A stretch of DNA of 64,000 nt from Tubulanus polymorphus (taxonomy: Eukaryota > Animalia > Nemertea). Positions 6,583 to 39,353 of the stretch are shown here, piece after piece. The notes beneath the pieces are model-generated. The model ran no database searches, was not told the DNA's origin, and saw only the letters and a program-made list of their open reading frames with translations. The translations under genes were made by a program, and so were the position numbers. How positions within the stretch are numbered: the first letter of the stretch is position 1; every line of letters begins with the position of its first letter. Location of the stretch: the NCBI RefSeq assembly GCF_964204645.1, contig NC_134031.1:3162001-3226000 (forward strand), read 5' to 3'.

Positions 6583-6651
6583 TTACGCTTGAGCCTCTTC
6601 GTCGGTTTTCAGTTTCATTTCTTCAGCTTCTCCGGCATCGTTTTCATCGGC
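6583..6651 (-). CDS. iGluR-like exon 7, acidic C-tail ADENDAGEAEEMKLKTDEEAQA*
   Basis: catttcattaag acceptor (AAG, less common), phase 0, purine-rich coding-like composition, TAA stop; AATAAA on the minus strand at 6473..6478. Confidence 0.65.
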   Translation of the reverse strand, partial: ADENDAGEAEEMKLKTDEEAQA

Positions 6652-9600
6652 CTTAATGAAATGTAAAGTTGATCAAAAGGTAGAATATGTACAAATTTTA
6701 TCGGCAAAGTAAGGGTTTATTACACTACTAAAAGAGCGTTGTTGTATGGCACAGAATGGTCCTGAAAGTATTCGTTGTTAGATTGGTTATTACAAATGAT
6801 ATTCTGCTCTAAATGCGTTTAGACAGTATAGACCTGACTGTGCAACTCGTCTATGTTTTAAACCCCAAAGCTAAGTTGCACTGTCTTGTTGACTACGCAA
6901 TTCCGTCGTAAGACTGGTCTGGCAACACTAGCCCAGGTTAATTTCGGATTCTTGACTTACTAAACGGAATAAGTCACTGGTCGTACTAGTTCTTACCTTT
7001 CCTTTATTCGAGTTTTTCTTCTTATGAATGCAAATCTCGATTATGAAGGCGATCAACGAGATGATGATACCGATGATGAGTACGAGCAAGGCGCCGCCGA
7101 ACTCGTCCAAACCGACCGACGTGTCGCCGTACATCTTACCACCACTAGCCGGTATATACTGCTCGTCGTTGACGCGGAATCGCTTGCAACTTTCACCGGA
7201 AACGAACCACTTGCGGTTGAGCGCGTGCAGCTTGCCTTCACCTTGCATTCTCAGCAAGGCGATGTCCAGACGACTTCTCAGTTGCGAGTTCTTCGCCACG
7301 GCGAACCCGTAACCTCTGCTGTTCACCGGGCGTCCGACGATAACCAAATCGCATTCGGGATTTCGACGAGTTGTATATTCGATCATTGGTTCTTCGCCGA
7401 TGAAGGCATACGACTCGTTGAGCGCTCGGTTCATGCCTCCGGTTACCGTCTTGGCTACTTGCAGATTCTTGAACATCTTCTTGTAGGTTTCGGTGGTGGA
7501 GTTTCGGAAGAACGAGTACGTCGAGCCTTTATCAACGGTACCGAAGTTGATGCCGGAACTCGCCAGTTCTTCGACGCTGCTCACGCGTGGTTTAGTGTTG
7601 AGGGTCGCGGCGCTTCGCACCATGCCGGAAATGTAGGTGACGAGGAAGACAAGACTGAAAAACCACCAGAAGGCGACCAGAATTCTGACTGAAATTGCTG
7701 CTGGACGGATTGTACTACCTGCCATAGAGAAAATAACATACGTTTATTTCCTTGAAAGTTATATGATTGCGTGAAGGAAAAACAGAAAGATTTAAAGTTA
7801 AACATAAAACGATAGCAAGTAACACATATTTCCTTAAAATGGAAATATACAAAATTACCATAATTACATGACTACATGACAAAGTTTTGCTCTAAAGAAG
7901 TGAAAAACGAGAAGTTGGAAATTTAGCTGGAAATTTGCGTTCATTTGAAGCATTATAAATCTTGTGAGTGTTGGTGTTGCCATGAAAATCTCGGGATGCC
8001 CAATGGAACAAGCCTGTAGTGAGTAAATTAACCAATTATTGAACACGCAACGCTAGAAATGTGGAATTGAAGTCCAAACATAGCTGCAGGCATAGGAACT
8101 CGGGACTTTGCGGGTAATGCATACAAGGTATCATAGATTTAAATGGCTAATGATCGTATATATCTTTTCTAACTTGCACCTTGTAAGAAAAGACTGCTCA
8201 ACATCAGCCACAAGCTTTTATTGATGGCGAATCTATCGTATTTCGTCGCTTCTTGCTTCGTTTCGTACGGGTTGAAATGCATGTACAATGCCAGAATAAC
8301 GCCGACCTGAATTGAGAGGGAAAAATGGGGAACTTTTATTAACATCATTCGAGCGTTCTGAATATTGCTACATCGCGCGCGCGTACAAAGCATTATAGGT
8401 CTTCTATCAACCCGTTAGAAAAATAATGGATTGTAACATGTTTGAAGATGAAGGAAATACCGAACATAAAAACATGAAAGGCATTTAGTCATCTTAGATG
8501 CTTTCACTGGAGATTAGAGATGTATCAGCCGTGTATGATGTGAGCCGTGACATCAATGTAATAATGATATCTCCGCATAAAAATCACGCGCTTAAGAAGC
8601 GATGTCATTTGTCACTTGATGGCGACGGCGTCTTCCCGAACTAGAGATGCACGAGCACCATTGGTAAATCGATAGCAGTTTTATAGACAAGTCTTCGCCT
8701 GAACATAAGTGCTAGTTCAACTATCGTTCGAGGGCTGGTATATTTCTCCTAAGAATTTTGGCAGTACGTTGCAGTGGTTTTACTGGTAAATTTTCCATCG
8801 GACGACCTTCTCAATTGGAACTCAAAATGCGACCTTATTCCCCCCTTCCTCACTCGCTCCCCCTACCTTCCACCCTCCCTCCCTCACTCTCGCCTTTCTT
8901 TGTCCGCAACTTGTTTTTGATATACGTACCACAACAAAGGCGATTATAACGGCAATCCATACACCGTACTTCAACGGCGACAGGAAGAAAGCCATCGTAG
9001 CCTTAGAGCCAGTCTCCGAACCGAAGTTCGTCTTTTTGCTCATGCCGACGACGATTCCTGTTTGCATGTAAGGTGTCGTGAAGTCGATGACTTTTTCGCG
9101 TTCGTGCGTGATTGTCAGCGCTGCAGCGGCAATGTTCGCTTCCTGAAAAATCGAATCAATCTGTGTCTATTAAAACGACGACATCCACTTAGGCCTCTAG
9201 CTTCTATACCCATGTCAATTCCGTATGGCATGGGGATTATGACATTAATGATTCTCCGTTTTGAAAGCCCTAACCCATAAGTCGATTCGGAAAACTGATC
9301 GCAACGCGTCACACTAGAAGGATATGGTCCCCAGGCTCTGCCGAAATTTAGCTCATTCCAAGCACCGTTTTGATCATCCCGCATATAAAAATTGTACCCA
9401 TTACTGCCTATCACTAAATGAAACATGGAATGAGAACTTTAGCCAACAAGGAGATTGTTCTAATGTGCGGATCTCCTCCCCTGGATCTAGTTCTAAAACT
9501 ATTTGTATGTATAGAGGCGATAAAATAAATAGAATTTGGATTTCTTTAGCATTTTTTAGACTCGCGCAGAGGATAGATATCTGTTTCGAACTTACGTCAC

Positions 9601-12600
9601 GAGTAATTTCGCCGACCATTCCGACCCATTGACCGTTTTCTTGAGAGCCGTATTTTCCATCCTTAACCAATATTATCTCGTAAGTTATCGTCATATCCTT
9701 GGCAATAGCGTCCAGTAGGTCTTTGATATAACCGAAGTATCGGTCATTACCTTTGGCGCCTGCATTTGTACTCTCAACCAAGTACGGCTTTTCCTGAAAA
9801 AAAGTTTTAGAATATTTACAGTTTTCCTCAGAACTTCGCACGAATATTTTCTGGTTTAGTTTCTATATTCAATTGGCTTTATTTACATGTATTTTTTATT
9901 TTTTAAGGATTCGAATCTTGGGCGAAACTTTGCAAACTTAAGTGCAACCGAATGTGACATAAGGAATAATGCTAAATTTTTATTTTTGTTTTGAAAGGAA
10001 ATAGATACATTTCAAATTTGTGAATTCTCGCGTCAGGGAATGTGACTAGTTGTTGTAAACCCTTACTTCTCTGGCCTTTGTCCCCATAAGGGGAAAAAGA
10101 AACCTCGAACCAACTGAAAATACCCCCAGTGACTAGGGTTGAATTATCTAGAATAATCGGTTATCCACAACGAGAAAGTTGACGCAGATTAGGGAATGCA
10201 CCGAAATGACAATACCCCGCACCATTTAAAAACTTTTCTTTTCCCAATCTCTTTCGCTAAGAAATGCGCCATATGTTTATCTAAGTGCACGGGAAAAATG
10301 CTTTGTTTAATCTGTCACGCGAATGCGACTGGATTTTATGTATATGCTAGTCGGCTATTCATTTTTTAAGGATCAGTCGACCCAATTTTCGATATAACGA
10401 AGCCCGCATCATCAAATAAAAGAACGCTCCTCGCAAATCGTCGCCGCCGACGCTGAAGAGGTATTCATACGCGCTCGTGTGTAATAACCCCGCATATTAT
10501 ACGTATCATAGCGCCAGACAAATGAGTGCCGTGTGTTCGCTTATTTGCGGCGATTACCAACACGTATTTTATCGCTTTCACGAGAAGGGTGTCGAACGTG
10601 TCTTGAAGTTGGAAAATATTCCAGACATCGATCGTAGATTTTAAGCCAAATTAGATTGTAAAGCTGTGGTCTTGCTTGTTAACATCTTCGAACGATTAGA
10701 TAATAACAAAAATCTATAAGAATTATGTATTCTTGATAATGATAGTAGACCTCCGATAAACTCGTCGGTTATCATAGCACAAGCGACCGTCTAAAATTTG
10801 ATTGAAGAACGAAACCACGAAAGTAACACTCTTAAAGAGGATTTTGACGTTTCAAATGCTATGAGCCATTTTGGGTTTATAGGATTTGAGTAGAAAAGTC
10901 GAAATTATCTTATGGCTTTTCTTTAAATTAGGGGTTCTATTCATCCCCATCGCCTGGGCCTTTCTGGGCTGTGGTGAACTGACATTAATCCCCAGTCGCC
11001 TCCCTCTAGCTTGATCAAGCTCGCCTCGAAAATCCTATTCGGCGCGAATTTCAAGATTGTTCCCTGGGAAATCGTATCAACTTCTTTGATGCGCACAGTT
11101 CAGGGTGATACCGTCCAATCTTTTAAAACAGACTCAGCTTCCCGCAGCGATTGAAATGCGATCACGAATGAAAGGGTTAACCGACGTGCGATGGTTCTAT
11201 CGCTGCCGGTTTTACATTAGCGCTCGTTGAGTAAGATTCATCCTATTTTTACACGCTAACGACCGCGCGATTACACGTCGAAATTAGCATCTATAACGCA
11301 CAGATTTACGGCGTAAATTCGAGCCGAAAATTGTGTTAATAACCATACGTCGAGATATAATACACGATGTGAATTCTGATGTCATAAATAAACGCGGCGA
11401 GAACTGTGCCGTGCGGTGTCACAGTCAAAGAAAAGGCTCTGGATGCAATTAATACTAGATATAATGATAGAGAACTATGTAGGCGCGTGGTAGGTTCGCC
11501 TACTATGTAGGCGCGTGGTAGGTTCACCTACATACTATCAAAATGTGGTGCTTAGTGCCTACCCGCACGACGCAGCGAAACATGTAACACACGGTAACAC
11601 AGAAACACGGAAACAAACACGACTCAATATTGTCCCCAAAACGCTCGGAAACATGACTGTATCCTGATTCCGTGTTTCCATGCGTCATGTGCGCTGGGCT
11701 TAAGCTATGTAGATAGTACAGGACTTTTGAAATCATAATCGTCCGTTCAAATTCTTCATTCCATTTAAGTAATTGATTCGCAAACGCTGTAGATTCGTGT
11801 CACTAAACGCCTTAAATTCAATGTAAATCACGTCTTCAACCTTATCAAGATTGTTCTCTTTTTCTATTTTCTCATTTTGATGACATTGTTGACACTGTCT
11901 GAATTCAGTTGATTATGTTTCCTTTGTGTAAATGTTCCGCCGCTATCTACAAAGCTTTCGAGACCATCCACGGGTAATGGCGGTTCGTTTTTATCGGCCT
12001 ATTCTCACGATTTACTCATATATTTGTTCTGCTTTTATGGATGTTTTACTGCAGCGAGCAATTTCTTCTGTTTATATTGAAATAGTGCACTATCGGTAGT
12101 ACATCGAAAATACTCGAGACACCGAGAAAAAAATCATTCGGAAGAACGTATCGGTACATTTTATGGAAAAACTCTAGGCTTTAAGTGCTTCAGTGAATAC
12201 GACAACTGCTAATGATATACTTACCAAAATAGTGGTTACGACCGCGTGGGGTTTACCATCTATCACAGGAAGACCATACTTCGTCTGGCCTAAAATGGGA
12301 GAATCATTTAGAATATATTAGGATTCTGTGGTGATAGTGCGAGTTTCGATCGTGCAAAGTTTGCCGTAAAATCATTAAACAAATTTTATATCGTTCAATA
12401 TGATATTGGCTAAAGTTTCAAGTTCGAGGTCGATGCTTATACTGCTCGTTATAAATGTTATTTTTGGATTCGCTGTATTTCGCCACCTTTCATTGTTTTT
12501 TTTTCATGTCGTTGTTTATGGTCGGTATCATGATATAGTGACTTTCATCGTCGGCTTTATCTTTAACCACATACACTGGTCGAAGGTTGAGATTGACTAC

Positions 12601-15600
12601 GTGTAAAAACCCATCAACGATATCACATTCTTAAGAGATCTTAGAAATTCTTGTTTAAAGATTATTTTAAGATATGCATAACATGTATGTATTGAAGTTA
12701 ATATCGGATTTCGATAAACTTTATTTGACAGCTAATATACCAAACGACACCGCAAACCCTTTTTAAAACTAAACTGAAAGTGCACATACGACCTAGCGAA
12801 AAATTAGGGTTGATGTCCATGATGCCAGAATACGAACGCATATCCCCGAATTTGTTAGGGGATCGGATATATCAATCAAAGCCCGATGGCCAATGGGCTC
12901 CCAAACACGACTTCATGCTTCCTTCGTATAGTCAATTCGTCAGAAACATTATCTTGTATTGTGTGACAAATGGCAATTTCAGGAAGATCGCCATTGATAT
13001 CTTTACGTAACACCTGTCTCCACAAACGACGATCAACATGTGGAAAATAAATTCATTATGCCTACATAGATATAAAGGCTTGAAACGAAGCCGTCTCCTC
13101 CAAGAGTTAAAAAGGCTAAGACTAAAAACCTTAGACTGAAAACTCATAAATCAGCTTCATGCTTTTCAATAAGTCAGAACTATTTTTGCGAAGTGGCTAT
13201 GCTATCGTGTTTCGGTCATTGCGGTGATGGCGACCAGTTTATTGGCTTCGGTCTGTCATGTCCCATCGCTTGAAAACAACATCATATATTAAGTACCATA
13301 TATCGGAGAAATGTCTGTCAGGTTCACATCGATGTGAATAGTGTTTGTAGCATATCGACAAGTGGTACGCGTCACCCCACGTCGCTGGTGCGGGATTATA
13401 TATCGGAGGGAGTGGGGGTGGTAGCGGTAATGGTGCGGCTCTATGAGTCATTGCTGTCAACCCATGTAACGTGGGAACTGAATAGAAACCAGCACTGCGC
13501 GCGCGCGCAATGTGATTTTGCGATATTGACGAGGAAGTAAAATGAGCAATATGACTGGGTTTCATACCGAGTTACGCAGCTACTGCTAATTTTGCAGGTA
13601 GTTAGGTTGAAAATGCTGATGCGACGATATCGTCGAAATGTTACATTATTTGTGAAACAACGAGGTAGCCCGTCATGTAGGTCTGAACGGCCTTCGTTAT
13701 CGGTTGCGTCGACGTAACGATACGATTTTCCCTTATACCGCTAATAAAAGAACCATTTCAACCCATCCACAAAGTTAGGATCGAAATTGCTCCTCCATCG
13801 TTCATACAGTTTAAAATTGCTTACATAGAGATGTAGTGAAAATAAGCATGATCATGATGATTTGATTACGAAACGTACGCCGAGATGGCAATTTTTGATT
13901 TCAGTATTTTCTCAAGGTCTCTCTATCGTATCACACACGTTAATATGTTTTGATATTTGAAAACAATTCGTTCGCTTTATTTGAAATACTACGAGCACTT
14001 CTCGCTGGGTATTGAACATCTGTATACATTGAATATTGAGCGTGTTTTATATCGATTGACACGCGGACGTTTATTTGAGAGACTCGTGCGCGTTTCTCCA
14101 GACCACGACAGCTGTATATGATATGTGTATGGCGAATCGCGTGTTATTTTGTTTTTGTAAAATGGCTTAATCGAGGCCTTCAAATGATGGCGGCTTGCGG
14201 AAACGAGCCGCGAGTCCAACTAAAGCGAAATCTTCGTACGGTGTAACCAAAATAAATGCAAGCATCCGGCAAAACTGGGGATATTGTCGAATGTCAAAAT
14301 AGCTCGAGGAAACCTTTCGGATCTTTGCTTTTTGTTTCGTAGGTTTTTACCGTATCAGGCATCCAGCATTACCGGATGGCACAAAACAAAATCAGTTAGT
14401 ATCGATGATTGACGACGTGTCCTCGGCGCGAGGTTTTTATTAATCCGCGAGATGATGATCCCTGGCGAGTGAGTCATTCGATGAAAGAGAAACATCGTTG
14501 GCGCATTTTCTCAAGGTCGCGTTATGATGCGCGTCGTTATACGCTGTGTTTACGACCATGCTGCAATCTTGTATCATCGAGCGTCCATGTTCGATGTTAC
14601 TCGACGTTGACACGGAATAAGGTCACACTCGTACCGGTCGATATCTGCGGACACAACTTATTATTCGAGTTCGTCTTTAGATTGGTTATTAGAGAAAGCG
14701 TGGATTACAGTAGAGGAAGTCCTTGGTCCCTGATGCTTGTCCATATTTTGGAATAAGACCCAGGTGCATACAGATTCATACAGTTCTAAGGGCGAACAGC
14801 TTTTGTAAAGTTCCTTTAATTTATACTAAATATTTATCGTTTCTATCCATGCCCGCCTATATGAACCATGGTTAATTGATTTACATATTGTATAAGTATT
14901 TGTGCATCTCTTTTTTCTTTAAGCTGTATATGGAAATCTGTAAATGCATGAACGCGTGTATGTATGAACCTGTTTTTGTGCTCCACGCAAATGTATTTTT
15001 TCTGGAGCAATCAACTAATTGTCACTCCAATGCACATGAATTCCAATTTAGAATTTAGGAGTGAAATAATATCACGATTCAGCGCGTCGCGACGATGAAT
15101 CTGGGAGAGTGCTTCCAATATTCGACAACGAACATAAATAAAGGAATTCTGAAACTCGATGAAAATCGGCTTTTCAAAGTTCTCCCTCAGTATATCGGGG
15201 CGGGTTTGATAGACTGGTAACCGCTTTAAACCGGGGGTTAACTCAATTGAAAATGATTTGAGTTAGCCCCCGAGTTATACATTATTCTATAAAACATTCT
15301 ATAAAACCGGTCCCGATAACATTTCCGAAAAAAAGGAATTCGTTCGATTTGACATTCCACAATATCCCCAGTTTTGCCGGATGCTTGCATTTTGTTACAC
15401 ACCGTACGAAGATTTCGCTTTAGTTGAACTCGCGGCTCGTTTCCGCAAGTCGCCATCATTTGAAGGCATCGATTAAAGCATTTTACAAAAACAAAATAAC
15501 ACGCGATTCGCCATACCGCCGCCAACCTGCCGCTGAGGTTTTCTCGCTGTAAAACAAACTCTCTTTCTAGTCATCGATTAGAAATCTGTTAGGTACCGCG

Positions 15601-16346
15601 AGATTTCGCACCCGACAATCGTCGTATTATTAACATTTGAAAATAAAAACTATGTAGATCAACGACGATGCTTGACGAACTGAAACCCTCGACGCGCGGC
15701 TAGCGTGCTCTTATAAACATCGCAGCTGGCGTCACTGGCTTCTTATCCAGGGTCGGACATCTTGGATAATCGACCGACGAAGATATCGATCCATGAATAA
15801 AATTAGACTTCCATTTTTTTTCTATTCAAAAACGCTCGTACAGGTAGCTTTGAATTTATCGTGTTCTTTAGCTTTACGATTACGTAAATACAGAATACAT
15901 GAATATGACTAGACGAACAATTCATTCTTGTTTACTCCGGTTTGAAATCCGGTTTGCATTGGCTTTTTGAACGTCGAAACGGGTATTACGACATTCGTCT
16001 TTCGTTAAAAAATCCAGCTTAGGTAATAGTCTAGCAATGCGTTTTCTCGAGAATTTTCAACGACGCCTTTTGTTAACGAAATGAAATTTGAATCATAGGC
16101 AAGCTCGGAGGGTGGTACAGGATACCGCCGAATCATCGGTTCTTCCTTCTCCGGATGCATAGAAATGGTGAAATATCAGAATACATTTTGTAGGGCCTGC
16201 AACTCCAACACCGGACCAAAAAAGAAATGAACAACGCCCCCCGTATTTTCAAGTTATTTCCCAGTTTTCGTTTTGCACTTACCTACTGCAAGTCCGATAA
16301 GCGACAATGCAACGACCAAAACGACTGAATACGCCTTTCTAACCAT
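6583..16346 (-). CDS. Ionotropic glutamate receptor-family protein (AMPA/kainate-like LBD) lacking the amino-terminal domain; 7 coding exons complement(join(6583..6651,6997..7718,8180..8306,8930..9142,9596..9793,12225..12289,16283..16346)), 1458 nt, 485 aa
   Basis: All six introns are GT..AG and the phases join without a stop (64+65+198+213+127+722+69 nt). Signal peptide MVRKAYSVVLVVALSLIGLAVG; S1 VVTTIL-EKPYL...GYIKDLL...DGKYG...WVGMVGE...ALTITHEREKVIDFTTPYM; M1 FLSPLKYGVWIAVIIAF; M2 SLWLMLSSLFLQG; M3 RILVAFWWFFSLVFLVTY; S2 FGTVDKGSTYSFF...YAFIGEEPMIEY...CDL...GYGFA...KWF...C; M4 FGGALLVLIIGIIISLIAFIIE. Confidence 0.9.
6997..7718 (-). CDS. iGluR-like exon 6 (M3, S2, M4)
   Basis: Core of ORF 6928..7725; tctctatggcag acceptor, AAG|GTAAGA donor; WWFF, GST, GYG, S2 cysteines and M4 helix. 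Confidence 0.95.
8180..8306 (-). CDS. iGluR-like exon 5 (end of M1, M2 pore loop)
   Basis: ctctcaattcag acceptor; VGVILALYMHFNPYE...NKSLWLMLSSLFLQG. The AAG|GTGCAA donor is weak but gives a gap-free alignment to QQGCDISPR. Confidence 0.88.
8930..9142 (-). CDS. iGluR-like exon 4 (S1 with ligand-binding Arg, pre-M1, start of M1)
   Basis: ttttcag acceptor, GTG|GTACGT donor; EANIAAAALTITHEREKVIDFTTPYMQTG...FLSPLKYGVWIAVIIAFVV. Confidence 0.92.
9596..9793 (-). CDS. iGluR-like exon 3 (S1: EKPYL...DGKYG...WVGMVGEITRD)
   Basis: ttttcag acceptor, GAC|GTAAGT donor, 66 codons with classic S1 motifs; lies within ORF 9401..9841. Confidence 0.93.
11474..11531. repeat. 28-bp tandem duplication (actatgtaggcgcgtggtaggttcRcct x2)
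   Basis: Two adjacent units differing at one base. Confidence 0.9.
11561..11700. mobile_element. PIF/Harbinger-like MITE, family D, degenerate copy in iGluR intron 2
   Basis: Shares gcacgacgcag, aacgctcggaaac and tgcgtcRtgtgcg with 18410..18565 and 26947..27011; ends gggct|taa. Confidence 0.6.
12225..12289 (-). CDS. iGluR-like exon 2 (GQTKYGLPVIDGKPHAVVTTIL)
   Basis: cccattttag acceptor and TTG|GTAAGT donor; ends with VVTTIL, the first S1 strand of AMPA/kainate receptors. Confidence 0.88.
14127..15516. repeat. Inverted repeat with ~170-bp arms (14127..14298 and 15348..15516) and ~1.05-kb spacer, in iGluR intron 1
   Basis: gtatggcgaatcgcgtgttattttgtttttgtaaaatg...gcaagcatccggcaaaactggggatattgt matches the reverse complement of the second arm with few mismatches. 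No TSD seen. Confidence 0.9.
15197..15314. mobile_element. Short palindromic MITE (GGGCCCGGTTTCATAGAC-type termini)
   Basis: Imperfect TIRs and internal cgggggtt/gcccccg inverted motifs; homologous to 22146..22255. Confidence 0.6.
16283..16346 (-). CDS. iGluR-like exon 1, signal peptide (MVRKAYSVVLVVALSLIGLAV-G)
   Basis: ATG in gagATGG context, basic N-region plus hydrophobic core, ends at TAG|GTAAGT in phase 1, matching the phase of exon 2. Confidence 0.8.
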
Positions 16347-17365
16347 CTCGTTTCGATTCTAAATCCGAAAATATTTCAGATCGCTCCTTTTGAAAATTGA
16401 TTCTCGTGCCGCCTCTACTTCTACAACAGCTATCTGCGCTCTTCGTTCTTTCCCGCTGCGTCTGCGCCGTGCAATGCAAAACAACCACGCCACAACACGA
16501 ACTCTCAACAGCTCGTAACACAACAGACGGCGGGGCCGCGCTGCGTGTTGATGTCGCTAATGCAATTATGCCGCGCATAATAGTAGTCGCAGCTATGATA
16601 TGCAAACAAAAAGAATTGTTCGAAAAAAGCAGCGATGTAGTTCAGACGGTTACGTACACGAATTTGCTTGATTTTCAGGGTAGGGTGTTGTTGATCGAAG
16701 GCGGTAAAACCCATTTTATCATTTATGAAATAATGCCGTGAGGTGATCTAAAATGATGATCGTTTTTTAAGATTTGTTTTCTCCGCGTCCGCCGTCGGGT
16801 TTTGATATCCAGGTCGCGATTTTCATGAAAATGGTGTAAATACACAAGGCTATGTATACTTTGCTGACGGTGGAGAGAGGACAATGGCTTTACAGCGACT
16901 CGTGAGTGTTTGTGGAGTTCGGCAGGGTCGAACGTGCGTCCCGAGAAGATATCGAGAATTGGGGTTAAAAGCAAAATGATCGGCAATTTATTCTGAAAGA
17001 ATTACACCTCAAATAATATGTGACGCTCAAGCCTACTTTCGTTTATACCGTGCTGGGGGATGTGAATAGTGAAGATATTACATAACGACCTGTTTGATAT
17101 TATTTATTATCATACAAATGTCAAACGGAGAAAGCCAACAAAAAGTCATTATTAGGTCATATATACATGTATAATTGCGATCGTGTCGTGAATGAAAAAA
17201 GTACGTGCTGGATATAATATGTGACACACGATGATTTCTGCGCAAATATGATTAATCATAATTAATCGTTTTTTAAGAGGCTTTATTGATATAGTGCAGT
17301 TTATTATATGGCCGTATAATGCATGGGCGTAGATACAGATACAGAAATAGAAACAGGGTTGGCTA

Positions 17366-33581: not shown

Positions 33582-34667
33582 TCAGCCGTTTTTAATAAGC
33601 GACACTTCTGTCATTTCGCCGCCGTAATTGCTACTACTACTATTGCTATTCAACACTCGACGACGCTGGCGACTCCTACCATAGCATAGATCTTTCAGCT
33701 GACTGCGGAATTTCTTCCCTACTAGGCAGTACAAGAAAAAGTTAACGCAATTGTTGATGGCCGACAAGTCGTACAATATGGGCAGCCACGTGATCAGTAA
33801 TCCTTTCTTCTTGTAGAACATCGTGACAATATGGAATAGAATAGACGGTCCTTCGAGGACGAAGAAGGCGAGGGCGACTAGAACGGCCCTCTTGGTCACT
33901 ATAGTTTCGATGTCCTGTTGCGAGTTTGTATTGCCGCAAGTGCGCATACCCGCCGAGCGCCGCACCGCGCGTACTATCATATAGTTCATGATGATTATCG
34001 ACAGCATCGGCACTAGAAAATAGACCAGGAAATAGCCCGTTATCACGTACAAATTCAGATAGATCGGGTGGAAGAAAGTCGTCGACAAGTTCGATTTCGG
34101 GCGGAGCCTATTCGTGCATTTGTCGAAAACGTACTTGACCTCGTAGGTCCACAGTTTCGGCAGACTGAACACGATGCTGAATATGAGAATAAGCACGGTG
34201 GCGATAGCGGCGTTCTTCCTCGTGCACCACGAGCGCGCGTGCAACGGCCGACAGCACGCTAACCACCTGTCGGTCGTCATCAAAATCACTAGATAAATCG
34301 AGAACACTTTGGACGTGGCGAACGAGAACCAAATCGCGTTCGAGGCGAGCATCGAGAATTCGAAGTAGCTCCCCAGTCGTCCGGTGAATTGAAATATTTC
34401 CGGCAACGCGTATTTCACTAAGTTCATCAACAACACGAAACTATCGGTGATCGATATGATACGCAGGATGAAGACGGGACTCGTCTTTTTCGTGCGGCCT
34501 TCTTTACCGAGTATGACGAACGCCAGGGCGTTAGTGATCAGTCCGGCAAAAACGATGACGACGAGCACGGGCACGTGTAAGACGAAATGAGCCATGTGCA
34601 CGTGAATATCCTTCATTTTACTATCGTAAATACACTCCGTGTCGTTATTTTGCGTCGAGTTATTCAT
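33582..34667 (-). CDS. Rhodopsin-class (class A) 7TM GPCR, FMRFamide-receptor-like/Srw-like orphan, single-exon CDS, 361 aa
   Basis: N-terminal sequons NNS/NST/NDT; TM1 GLITN; TM2 ISITD; TM3 DRW followed by ACCRPL; TM4 FSLP; TM5 FLVP..N; TM6 FFVLEGP; TM7 NNCVNFFLYC; helix 8 KKFR. Confidence 0.93.
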   Translation of the reverse strand: MNNSTQNNDTECIYDSKMKDIHVHMAHFVLHVPVLVVIVFAGLITNALAFVILGKEGRTKKTSPVFILRIISITDSFVLLMNLVKYALPEIFQFTGRLGSYFEFSMLASNAIWFSFATSKVFSIYLVILMTTDRWLACCRPLHARSWCTRKNAAIATVLILIFSIVFSLPKLWTYEVKYVFDKCTNRLRPKSNLSTTFFHPIYLNLYVITGYFLVYFLVPMLSIIIMNYMIVRAVRRSAGMRTCGNTNSQQDIETIVTKRAVLVALAFFVLEGPSILFHIVTMFYKKKGLLITWLPILYDLSAINNCVNFFLYCLVGKKFRSQLKDLCYGRSRQRRRVLNSNSSSSNYGGEMTEVSLIKNG

Positions 34668-38267: not shown

Positions 38268-39353
38268 ATGGTTATCACCGAAAATGCCGTTTTCAGCGTT
38301 GCTAGATATTACATGGCTTACGTCAATCCGTTTATCATATTCTCGGGAGTTGTCGGAAACGTGTTGACGCTCGTCGTCCTACCGACAATTCGTAACAAAG
38401 TGCACAGCGCGACGGTAACGTATTTACTCTGTCTGGCGGTCAGCGACTTGCTCGTTCTATTTTCGTCGAGTATTCCGGAGTGGTACGGAATTCACTTACC
38501 GGCCGTCATCGATCACGACAGCGACTCGTCGTCGACTTTTCCCAGGTTGAACATCCTCACAATCAGCGACGCGGCATGCAAGAACCTTTTCTACATCTAC
38601 GACGCTTCCTCGACGATTTCCGCGTGGATTCTGGTCATATTTGCCGTGGAACGATGCATAGCCATTTGGTTTCCGCTCAACGTTTCTACCCTGGTCACCA
38701 AACGGCGTAGGTACGTGGCGGTATTTTTTGTCATCTGTCTTGCGTGTCTCACTCGCTTCCCGTCGTTTCTCTACGCCGCTGTTCATTCGCCTGTCGGCAT
38801 TAACGTAACGATATGTTCGATCAAACCTTCCAATCTGGCACCGGGCATGTTTCAGTTGTATTCCATTCTCCAGTACATGCTGCATACGACAATTCCGTGG
38901 GCGGCTATTTGTACTAACTCGGCCCTAGTCCTGGCTCGGATACGCTCGCCTTACGGGCACCTCAGATCGGCTTCCGCTGTAAACATCAAACGCGATCGTA
39001 AATGCTTGCTGAATCTGATGGCCGTCAACGGCGCGTTTATCATCTTACTCGGCCCGCAGACTATCATCGGAACCTTGTACACGTGCTCGCGAAGTCAGAG
39101 TAGCGATTTGAGTTTCATACCGGCCGGGTTCACGTCTCATTTGACGCATCTGTTCGAATTGAGCGTCCTGGCGAAGAACATCGCCGCGGTGAATCATTCG
39201 ATAAACAACGTAATTTACACGTACAACATCAAACAGTATCGCGAAGGTTTGAAGCGAATTTTCTGCTGTCGACGAAACGACGATTCATCGGCGAGATACC
39301 TGAATCGGCGTAGCGCTATCAGTGCACGTCGGTCATCGGAAACGGATTTATAG
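38268..39353 (+). CDS. Rhodopsin-class (class A) 7TM GPCR, peptide-receptor-like orphan, single-exon CDS, 361 aa
   Basis: TM1 GVVGN; TM2 LAVSD; Cys3.25 in DAACK; TM3 ERC followed by IAIWFPL; ECL2 Cys in VTICS; TM5 TIPW..N; TM6 FIILLGP; TM7 NHSINNVIY; helix 8 QYREGL. Confidence 0.92.
   Translation: MVITENAVFSVARYYMAYVNPFIIFSGVVGNVLTLVVLPTIRNKVHSATVTYLLCLAVSDLLVLFSSSIPEWYGIHLPAVIDHDSDSSSTFPRLNILTISDAACKNLFYIYDASSTISAWILVIFAVERCIAIWFPLNVSTLVTKRRRYVAVFFVICLACLTRFPSFLYAAVHSPVGINVTICSIKPSNLAPGMFQLYSILQYMLHTTIPWAAICTNSALVLARIRSPYGHLRSASAVNIKRDRKCLLNLMAVNGAFIILLGPQTIIGTLYTCSRSQSSDLSFIPAGFTSHLTHLFELSVLAKNIAAVNHSINNVIYTYNIKQYREGLKRIFCCRRNDDSSARYLNRRSAISARRSSETDL

Follow-up and report, generated by a model that had tools for sequence, protein, structure and literature searches.

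The 64,000-nucleotide stretch of DNA analysed here (hereafter, the window) comes from the palaeonemertean Tubulanus polymorphus (assembly GCF_964204645.1, contig NC_134031.1, positions 3,162,001 to 3,226,000 of the forward strand) and holds, on its minus strand at 16346..6583, a seven-exon gene for an ionotropic glutamate receptor (iGluR) subunit. The gene is intact, spliced and expressed; it belongs to the AKDF (non-NMDA) subfamily, and its product consists only of a signal peptide, the clamshell of a ligand-binding domain (LBD) and a channel domain; the amino-terminal domain (ATD) is truly absent. The exons sum to 1458 nt, i.e., 485 codons plus stop, and encode in order a signal peptide, a 14-residue linker and S1-M1-M2-M3-S2-M4. 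The 485-aa model is already annotated in RefSeq as XP_074654230.1, "glutamate receptor ionotropic, kainate 2-like" (P0001 in what follows).

The exons were located from lists of open reading frames (ORFs) and three-frame translations, and their boundaries were fixed by exon-wise translation against the database protein, which is matched residue for residue by the translation of all seven. The whole-protein analyses described below were run on P0001, identical to the window-encoded product, and the exons were searched singly, never as a joined model. All six introns are of the GT..AG type. The features, in window coordinates, are the following:

16346-16283, minus strand: exon 1, ATG and signal peptide MVRKAYSVVLVVALSLIGLAV plus the first base of G22; phase 1; donor AG/GTAAGT
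12290..16282, minus strand: intron 1, 3993 nt, GT..AG, without ATD-like coding sequence; removed in the contig of run X4
14127..15516, strand unassigned: transposon-like insert in intron 1, with inverted repeats at 14127-14298 and 15348-15516 that are 96-98% complementary
12289-12225, minus strand: exon 2, residues 22-43, GQTKYGLPVIDGKPHAVVTTIL; short linker and first S1 strand; acceptor TTTTAG
9793-9596, minus strand: exon 3, residues 44-109; main part of S1 (PF10613), including Y91
9142-8930, minus strand: exon 4, residues 110-180; end of S1 with T119 and R124 (ALTITHEREK), pre-M1 and start of M1
8306-8180, minus strand: exon 5, residues 181-222 plus one base; rest of M1, M1-M2 loop and M2 pore loop SLWLMLSSLFLQ
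8186-8184, minus strand: Q/R site Leu221, within exon 5
7718-6997, minus strand: exon 6, residues 223-463; M3, S2 (GST 287-289, E331, Cys345/Cys400) and M4
7612..7638, minus strand: residues 250-258, TYISGMVRS, the M3 gate motif (SYTANLAAF in canonical subunits), with Arg257 as the Lurcher-position residue
6651-6583, minus strand: exon 7, residues 464-485, ADENDAGEAEEMKLKTDEEAQA, and stop codon

The peptide of exon 1, MVRKAYSVVLVVALSLIGLAV, opens with a basic segment, continues with a hydrophobic core of 17 residues and has small residues ahead of a likely cleavage after G22. The mature N-terminus is QTKYGLPVIDGKPH, directly followed by AVVTTILEKPY, the start of S1. The length of intron 1 (~4 kb) looks to be due in part to the transposon-like insert, in which inverted repeats of ~170 nt flank ~1.05 kb; the segment 15080-15273 of this intron is a high-copy repeat, because its depth in the DNA run is ~2665 as compared with ~30 elsewhere.

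Transcript support was provided by sequencing run X4, in which a contig of 1826 nt (word depth 1307.5) joins 12224-12288 directly to 16282-16437. The skipped sequence amounts to 3993 nt and has CT..AC ends, equivalent to GT..AG on the minus strand; the exon 1-exon 2 joint is not present in the DNA run X1. The next 30 letters at the loose end of the contig map to 9763-9792, so exon 2 is also joined to exon 3. The 5' untranslated region extends to at least 16437 and, within the same contig, an in-frame TAG lies at 16361-16359, five codons ahead of the ATG, which precludes any longer reading of the N-terminus through exon 1.

The absence of the ATD was established by five independent lines, namely, domains, genome scan, protein search, transcript and paralog. 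Canonical subunits carry a PF01094 ATD of ~400 aa before S1. Pfam found PF10613 (2e-35), PF00060 (1.2e-26) and PF00497 in P0001, and PF01094 was not found in it. A six-frame scan for PF01094 over the whole 268-Mb assembly at E<=1 gave 124 matches, many of them beside other iGluR loci, with none inside the 64-kb window; the nearest on the chromosome are ~0.4 and 0.64 Mb away. When the pre-S1 parts of 66 ATD-bearing relatives were compared with the window by tblastn, only chance matches were obtained (best E 0.07). Moreover, the paralog P0045, located 2.6 Mb off on the same chromosome (568537-573305), has the same seven-exon layout: a signal-peptide exon, an exon 2 of ~22 codons whose last residues are VTTI, and next the exon for S1; intron 1 measures just ~650 bp there. 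The preliminary description of this DNA, made from the letters alone, had proposed a 485-aa iGluR without ATD, in which a phase 1 exon 1 is joined to an exon 2 that reaches the S1 start soon after, with no ATD-like coding exons in intron 1. It had suggested looking for transcripts across the 16283/12289 junction and for PF10613 and PF00060 without PF01094. All of this is borne out by the gene structure, Pfam and the X4 contig, which joins exactly at that junction, and the PF01094 and tblastn searches extend the negative result from intron 1 to the full 64 kb.

The rest of the protein is a complete iGluR core, with the PF10613 clamshell split by the PF00060 channel and followed by M4, as is proper of the superfamily. 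Against all PDB sequences, the best match of P0001 is GluK2 (8e-75, 255 bits), then GluK3, GluA4 and GluA1-3 (GluA1-4 at ~233-240 bits), and the alignments span residues 36 to ~465, that is, S1 through M4 of the matched chains. An AlphaFold2 model built from a 20-sequence alignment (mean pLDDT 81.6) aligns with the LBD and transmembrane domain (LBD-TMD) parts of GluK2 and GluA1-4 structures over ~440 columns at 33% identity (E ~1e-35), with no domain left over, and the ESM Atlas model agrees with the LBD-channel fold. The alpha-amino-acid contact residues of GluA2/GluK2 are all kept: Y91, T119, R124, S288, T289 (in KGST) and E331 (in FIGEE), the equivalences with GluA2 being read from alignments plus established knowledge of that subunit. 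R124 is invariant across the family alignment, and the S2 disulfide pair is also kept as Cys345/Cys400. The LBD had been described beforehand as AMPA/kainate-like and the pore as devoid of the K+ filter of GluR0 and AvGluR1, and both statements hold: GluK2 and GluA1-4 are the best solved relatives, and TxVGYG is not present in the pore loop, which reads SLWLMLSSLFLQGSTIRP. In the stretch ...SSLFLQGSTIRP of this loop, Leu221 stands where AMPA/kainate subunits carry the glutamine of the Q/R site. The M3 gate, TYISGMVRS, differs from SYTANLAAF, the most conserved motif of the family, at eight of nine positions, and places Arg257 at the Lurcher position.

An exhaustive protein search with exon 6 gave 2409 proteins, the best of which, after P0001 itself, is only 31% identical. 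Many of the matches are complete proteins of ~450-530 aa, in which S1 starts 25-50 residues past the signal peptide. The rows for phylogenetic trees were drawn from the exhaustive representative search and from a search with a vertebrate kainate-binding protein (KBP) as query; word-index searches with P0001 and with an alignment gave 12 and 20 proteins, of little use for sampling. A quick tree of 106 rows (LG+G4) and two careful ones, of 73 rows (LG+G4) and 55 rows (LG+C20+F+G4), were calculated. The 55-row tree left out the long branches P0200, P0102, P0003 and P0114, and its kainate rows were thinned.

P0001 groups with four Tubulanus proteins (P0085, P0004, P0045 and P0086) and Lineus P0075 in an inner clade of six rows (support 100/91 and 99/89). 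The addition of Lineus P0007 and two units of P0002 makes a nemertean clade of nine rows, supported by 99/97 in the 73-row LG+G4 tree and 96/82 in the 55-row LG+C20 tree, and the ATD is lacking in all nine. P0002 itself (Lineus longissimus XP_064648822.1, 989 aa) consists of two complete tandem ATD-less iGluR units, residues 34-465 and 529-979, and is either the result of neighbouring genes merged by annotation or a genuine two-unit protein. Under the site-heterogeneous model, the nemertean clade falls with three other groups into a wider clade of 19 rows (98/97). One of them comprises ATD-less proteins of a chiton, an abalone, a bivalve and the annelid Owenia together with Tubulanus P0061 (100/98), another consists of hemichordate proteins (99/94), and the third is a single unnamed metagenomic protein. 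Two of the hemichordate members are ATD-less (Glandiceps, Ptychodera) and two carry PF01094 (Glandiceps P0108, Saccoglossus P0148). The NCBI names of the Lineus, chiton and abalone members are "probable glutamate receptor" and "glutamate receptor U1-like".

The named classes stand apart from this clade. AMPA receptors (100/100, anchored by P0143 with 720 bits to GluA3) and kainate receptors (anchored by P0105 with 589 bits to GluK2, plus marsupial GluK1) both exclude P0001, and AMPA plus kainate has a support of 89/96 in the 55-row tree. A Delta/Phi-like group (93/96) of starfish, Saccoglossus, amphioxus and Owenia proteins is separate as well; one of its members, Asterias P0015, has equal scores against GluD2 and GluK3. 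A crinoid protein (P0151, 527 aa, ATD-less), the top word-index match, was considered as a relative and rejected: its place is within the kainate clade, next to echinoderm proteins that bear an ATD, and it is probably a truncated model.

The preliminary description had asked for a phylogeny and for ATD-less relatives elsewhere, and had regarded the gene as an independently miniaturised lineage. In the trees, the gene lies outside AMPA, kainate and Delta/Phi-like receptors, and ATD-less relatives were found in Lineus, a chiton, an abalone, a bivalve, an annelid and two hemichordates. The lone lineage does not stand: the gene belongs to a nine-row ATD-less clade, and its build is common to all the nemertean rows, to the layout of paralog P0045 and to sister groups. 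On this topology, the short build is best read as inherited, at the latest, from the ancestor of the nemertean gene cluster and not as a loss in the window gene itself; by the same reading it predates the Tubulanus-Lineus split, and it may go back to an early spiralian ancestor. As two hemichordate members still have the ATD, its loss within the wider clade probably took place at least twice. A parsimony count of ATD changes, which came to three, was set aside as uninformative, since it permits regain of the domain. The distinctive gate is also a property of the group, with Lys or Arg at the M3 Lurcher position in seven of the nine rows of the nemertean clade (Tubulanus and Lineus, in the tree-row alignment). 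This recurrence suggests that the unusual gate is not in decay but preserved, presumably under selection.

Short iGluR builds are, as far as a rough count goes, common in the Tubulanus genome. It contains ~45 LBD loci, and for about half of them a rough hand comparison shows no same-strand PF01094 match in the ~10 kb upstream. Further ORFs of ~260-315 aa on C10, C3, C4 and other contigs match PF00060 and not PF10613, as expected of divergent IR-like genes.

From sequence and build, we regard the vertebrate KBPs as the closest known analogue of the window protein. They had been omitted from the list of known ATD-less forms in the preliminary description, in spite of being ATD-less and kainate-like, with 457-487 aa in the rows used here. 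They are the main known case of iGluR subunits that lack the ATD and retain an intact glutamate pocket; they bind kainate tightly, are abundant and, from work of ~1989-1997, are not known to give homomeric currents. To our knowledge, their function has never been settled. In the chick and frog KBPs, GLRK and Xenopus glutamate receptor U1, the signal peptide runs straight into S1 with no PF01094, in a length that brackets the 485 aa found here, and the kainate/AMPA-like LBD has canonical contact residues in both cases; the window protein thus shares the ATD-less build of ~460-490 aa. A search with a frog protein (P0154), itself found with P0001, gave over a thousand relatives, and those listed are of ~430-580 aa and without PF01094. 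Their names include "Kainate binding protein" (Gallus), "GLRK protein", "probable glutamate receptor" and "glutamate receptor U1", and they are listed from teleosts, bowfin, paddlefish, coelacanth, lungfish, amphibians, reptiles and birds. The nearest ESM Atlas clusters by learned features bear the same kind of name ("glutamate receptor U1", "probable glutamate receptor"; score 0.97).

Three signature positions are common to KBPs and the invertebrate clade and to no other group in the alignment. The first is a hydrophobic Q/R site, which reads TLQG in KBPs, F/T/M-LQG in nemerteans and hemichordates (FLQG here) and xWQG in the mollusc/annelid clade. The second is S2 "FIGES" in KBPs and the invertebrate clade versus "FL[L/M]ES" in AMPA/kainate receptors. 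The third is the gate, with "Y[I/V/L]" (M3 "AYI.." in KBPs) versus "YT" ("SYT..") in AMPA/kainate receptors. There are also differences: KBPs form their own 100/100 clade and are confined to non-mammalian vertebrates, the nemertean gate is more degenerate than that of KBPs, and the basic residue that it carries at the Lurcher position is lacking in KBPs. In our literature search, no paper turned out to be devoted to KBPs, nemertean IRs or invertebrate iGluRs without ATD; the only mentions were automatic names of the "glutamate receptor U1-like" kind, in scallop and chaetognath studies.

Other iGluR families offer more partial likenesses. AMPA/kainate subunits (GluA1-4, GluK1-5) match best over S1-M4, in sequence as in structure (E ~1e-75, 33% identity), and have the same ligand contacts, but they bear an ATD, and P0001 is outside both classes in every tree, has Leu at the Q/R site and has lost SYTANLAAF. 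The bacterial GluR0 and the rotifer AvGluR1 also lack an ATD, but the TxVGYG filter is theirs and is absent in P0001, which has an M4. Protostome ionotropic receptors (IRs), both the tuning IRs and IR76b, are likewise iGluR-derived, ATD-less and prone to lineage-specific expansions. IRs are defined by an LBD in which at least one of the residues that contact glutamate (R, T and D/E) is missing, and the N-terminal regions of tuning IRs are of ~200 aa without ATD homology (PMC2924276). By comparison, the window protein has a canonical LBD (R124, T119 and E331 are present, plus Y91, S288 and T289) and a 14-aa linker, its clade includes deuterostome genes, and it shows far greater sequence identity to canonical iGluRs. 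In a 2026 preprint, IRs are the sister group of Delta receptors, and the Delta/Phi-like group of our trees is separate from the clade of the window gene; the single IR-like protein available, from a crab, has a branch too long to be useful.

As regards Delta and Phi, these are also non-AMPA, non-kainate bilaterian AKDF lineages of patchy distribution, according to Ramos-Vicente et al. 2018 (PMC6307864). In that study, Phi is given only for amphioxus, hemichordates and echinoderms, and a table lists a 472-aa Ptychodera Phi protein with an ATD of only 50 residues. The amphioxus Phi rows there (GluF1/2_Bbe) have LVGQGG and an intact SYTANLAAF, unlike P0001, in what is a comparison of motifs only. 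By accession number or short motif, none of our rows was matched to a named protein of that study. As a separate observation, P0033 and P0069 (Owenia fusiformis and a relative) have the pore loops SLVGIGP and SLVGFGP together with an intact SYTANLAAF, and resemble the CLVGQGG of amphioxus Phi as given in the same study. The Phi class, reported as lost in protostomes, may be present in annelids.

Taking these results together, we think that the gene probably encodes a KBP-like amino-acid-binding or modulatory subunit with a non-canonical gate; this judgement combines a near-certain gene identity with a mechanism to which we give slightly less than even chances. L-glutamate or a close analogue is its most likely ligand, because the clamshell keeps all the alpha-amino-acid contact residues and the S2 disulfide. 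Three departures from canonical subunits would then shape its behaviour: a Leu at the pore tip instead of Gln/Arg, the TYISGMVRS gate with Arg at the Lurcher position, and the lack of the ATD that directs assembly. Tetramers would have to form without ATD-guided assembly. The alanine at the Lurcher position controls gate closure, as established by substitution work on GluD2 and AMPA receptors, and a ring of arginines at this place would be expected either to hinder cation flow or to destabilise the closed state. A homomer would presumably not gate a normal cation current, and an abundant subunit binding amino acids with high affinity, as KBPs do, could be expected. Its role might be that of a binding or modulatory subunit, or of an obligate partner of other subunits.

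Several points weigh against this interpretation. The ligand, channel activity, partners and tissue of the 485-aa subunit are all deduced from its sequence. The record of run X4 gives the library type as "?", and its RNA nature is deduced from the lack of the intron in the contig; this single contig, moreover, leaves room for rare alternative 5' exons. As regards the link with KBPs, these proteins as sister to the clade have a support of 47/63 in the LG+G4 tree, the backbone has 70/65 in the C20 tree, and holding KBPs and the invertebrate clade together was neither favoured nor rejected in an approximately unbiased (AU) test (delta log-likelihood 0.16, p 0.50). The shared signatures could also have arisen convergently, through relaxation of a gate fallen out of use. 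Furthermore, IR-like sequences are represented in the trees by a single row, the very long crab branch, and not by a bona fide IR25a, IR8a or tuning IR.

This last point bears on the view that the protein is a chemosensory receptor of the IR kind, an ATD-less tuning subunit that senses external amino acids and needs an ATD-bearing co-receptor similar to IR25a. A protostome gene without ATD, with at least 5 Tubulanus paralogs in its clade as a lineage-specific expansion, in a genome in which about half of the ~45 LBD loci have no ATD match nearby, is what this view would predict. Tuning IRs and IR76b are ATD-less (PMC2924276; bioRxiv 10.64898/2026.09.30.755715), and an arthropod "Ionotropic receptor IR5" cluster appears at 0.96 in the ESM Atlas. 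Nevertheless, we consider it unlikely: P0001 keeps all the contact residues and a linker of just 14 aa, hemichordate (deuterostome) genes are in the enclosing clade although IRs are described as protostome-specific, and P0001 is 33-37% identical to canonical iGluRs versus 22% to the IR-like crab protein. A word depth of 1307 in one run is also high for a receptor limited to few sensory cells, which is a weak argument.

The subunit could instead be an ordinary glutamate-gated cation channel that works without an ATD, in the manner of engineered ATD-deleted AMPA/NMDA subunits. Its LBD, three membrane helices, pore loop and S2 disulfide are complete, ATD-deleted AMPA constructs with solved LBD-TMD structures align with the AlphaFold2 model, and NTD-less GluN2 subunits still form receptors, as cited in PMC5225553. 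We give this a small chance, as SYTANLAAF is changed at eight of nine positions, with Arg at the Lurcher position and Leu at the Q/R site, and KBPs are marked by the same kind of change. Finally, alternative upstream exons might encode a missed ATD, the 485-aa form being a minor isoform or an annotation artefact. There is a single transcript contig, and contigs drop rare variants; on the other side are the 64 kb free of PF01094 (E<=1) and tblastn matches, the in-frame stop ahead of the ATG within the transcript, the same layout in P0045 with a 650-bp intron 1 and the nine ATD-less nemertean relatives out of nine. In addition, going upstream on either strand, the first coding sequences are two separate intronless ORFs of rhodopsin-type G protein-coupled receptors (GPCRs), at 33.6 and 38.3 kb. 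A missed ATD is thus highly improbable, and the KBP-like subunit stays as our preferred reading.

Two other observations concern the window. The GPCR ORFs are divergent and of 361 aa each, at 33582-34667 (minus strand) and 38268-39353 (plus strand); both match PF00001 (6e-18 and 1e-18) and have a weak likeness to nematode serpentine chemoreceptor families. The contigs of runs X2 and X3 break at 12637, 12861, 14323, 15660, 15795 and 16383 with the same 8-12 foreign letters (GATGGACGAACC or its complement). The break at 16383 lies at GATC, and the foreign letters look like a library linker, not biology.

Taken singly, the window gene is an unremarkable member of a multi-phylum family, and one already annotated. 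In our opinion, the family and its possible link with KBPs are a more interesting lead. The members of the 98/97 clade are mostly ATD-less, with a hydrophobic Q/R site and a degenerate SYTANLAAF. We propose only tentatively, and with some doubt, that this clade may be a bilaterian AKDF class outside the named AMPA, kainate, Delta, Phi and IR classes and also the invertebrate counterpart of vertebrate KBPs. In some surveys, ATD-less iGluR models that keep the glutamate-binding residues have been treated as "not full length" (Biomphalaria, PMC4890853) or not singled out. Here, short ATD-less subunits are seen to be expressed and conserved in a ribbon worm, and the clade in which they fall together with genes of molluscs, an annelid and acorn worms is well supported. 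For gating studies, they are a natural source of M3 gates that carry a basic residue at the Lurcher position. If the clade is indeed an unnamed class, the ATD would have been lost repeatedly inside it; and if the link with KBPs holds, these genes would provide a comparative handle on KBP function, so that a question of 35 years would become testable in invertebrates.

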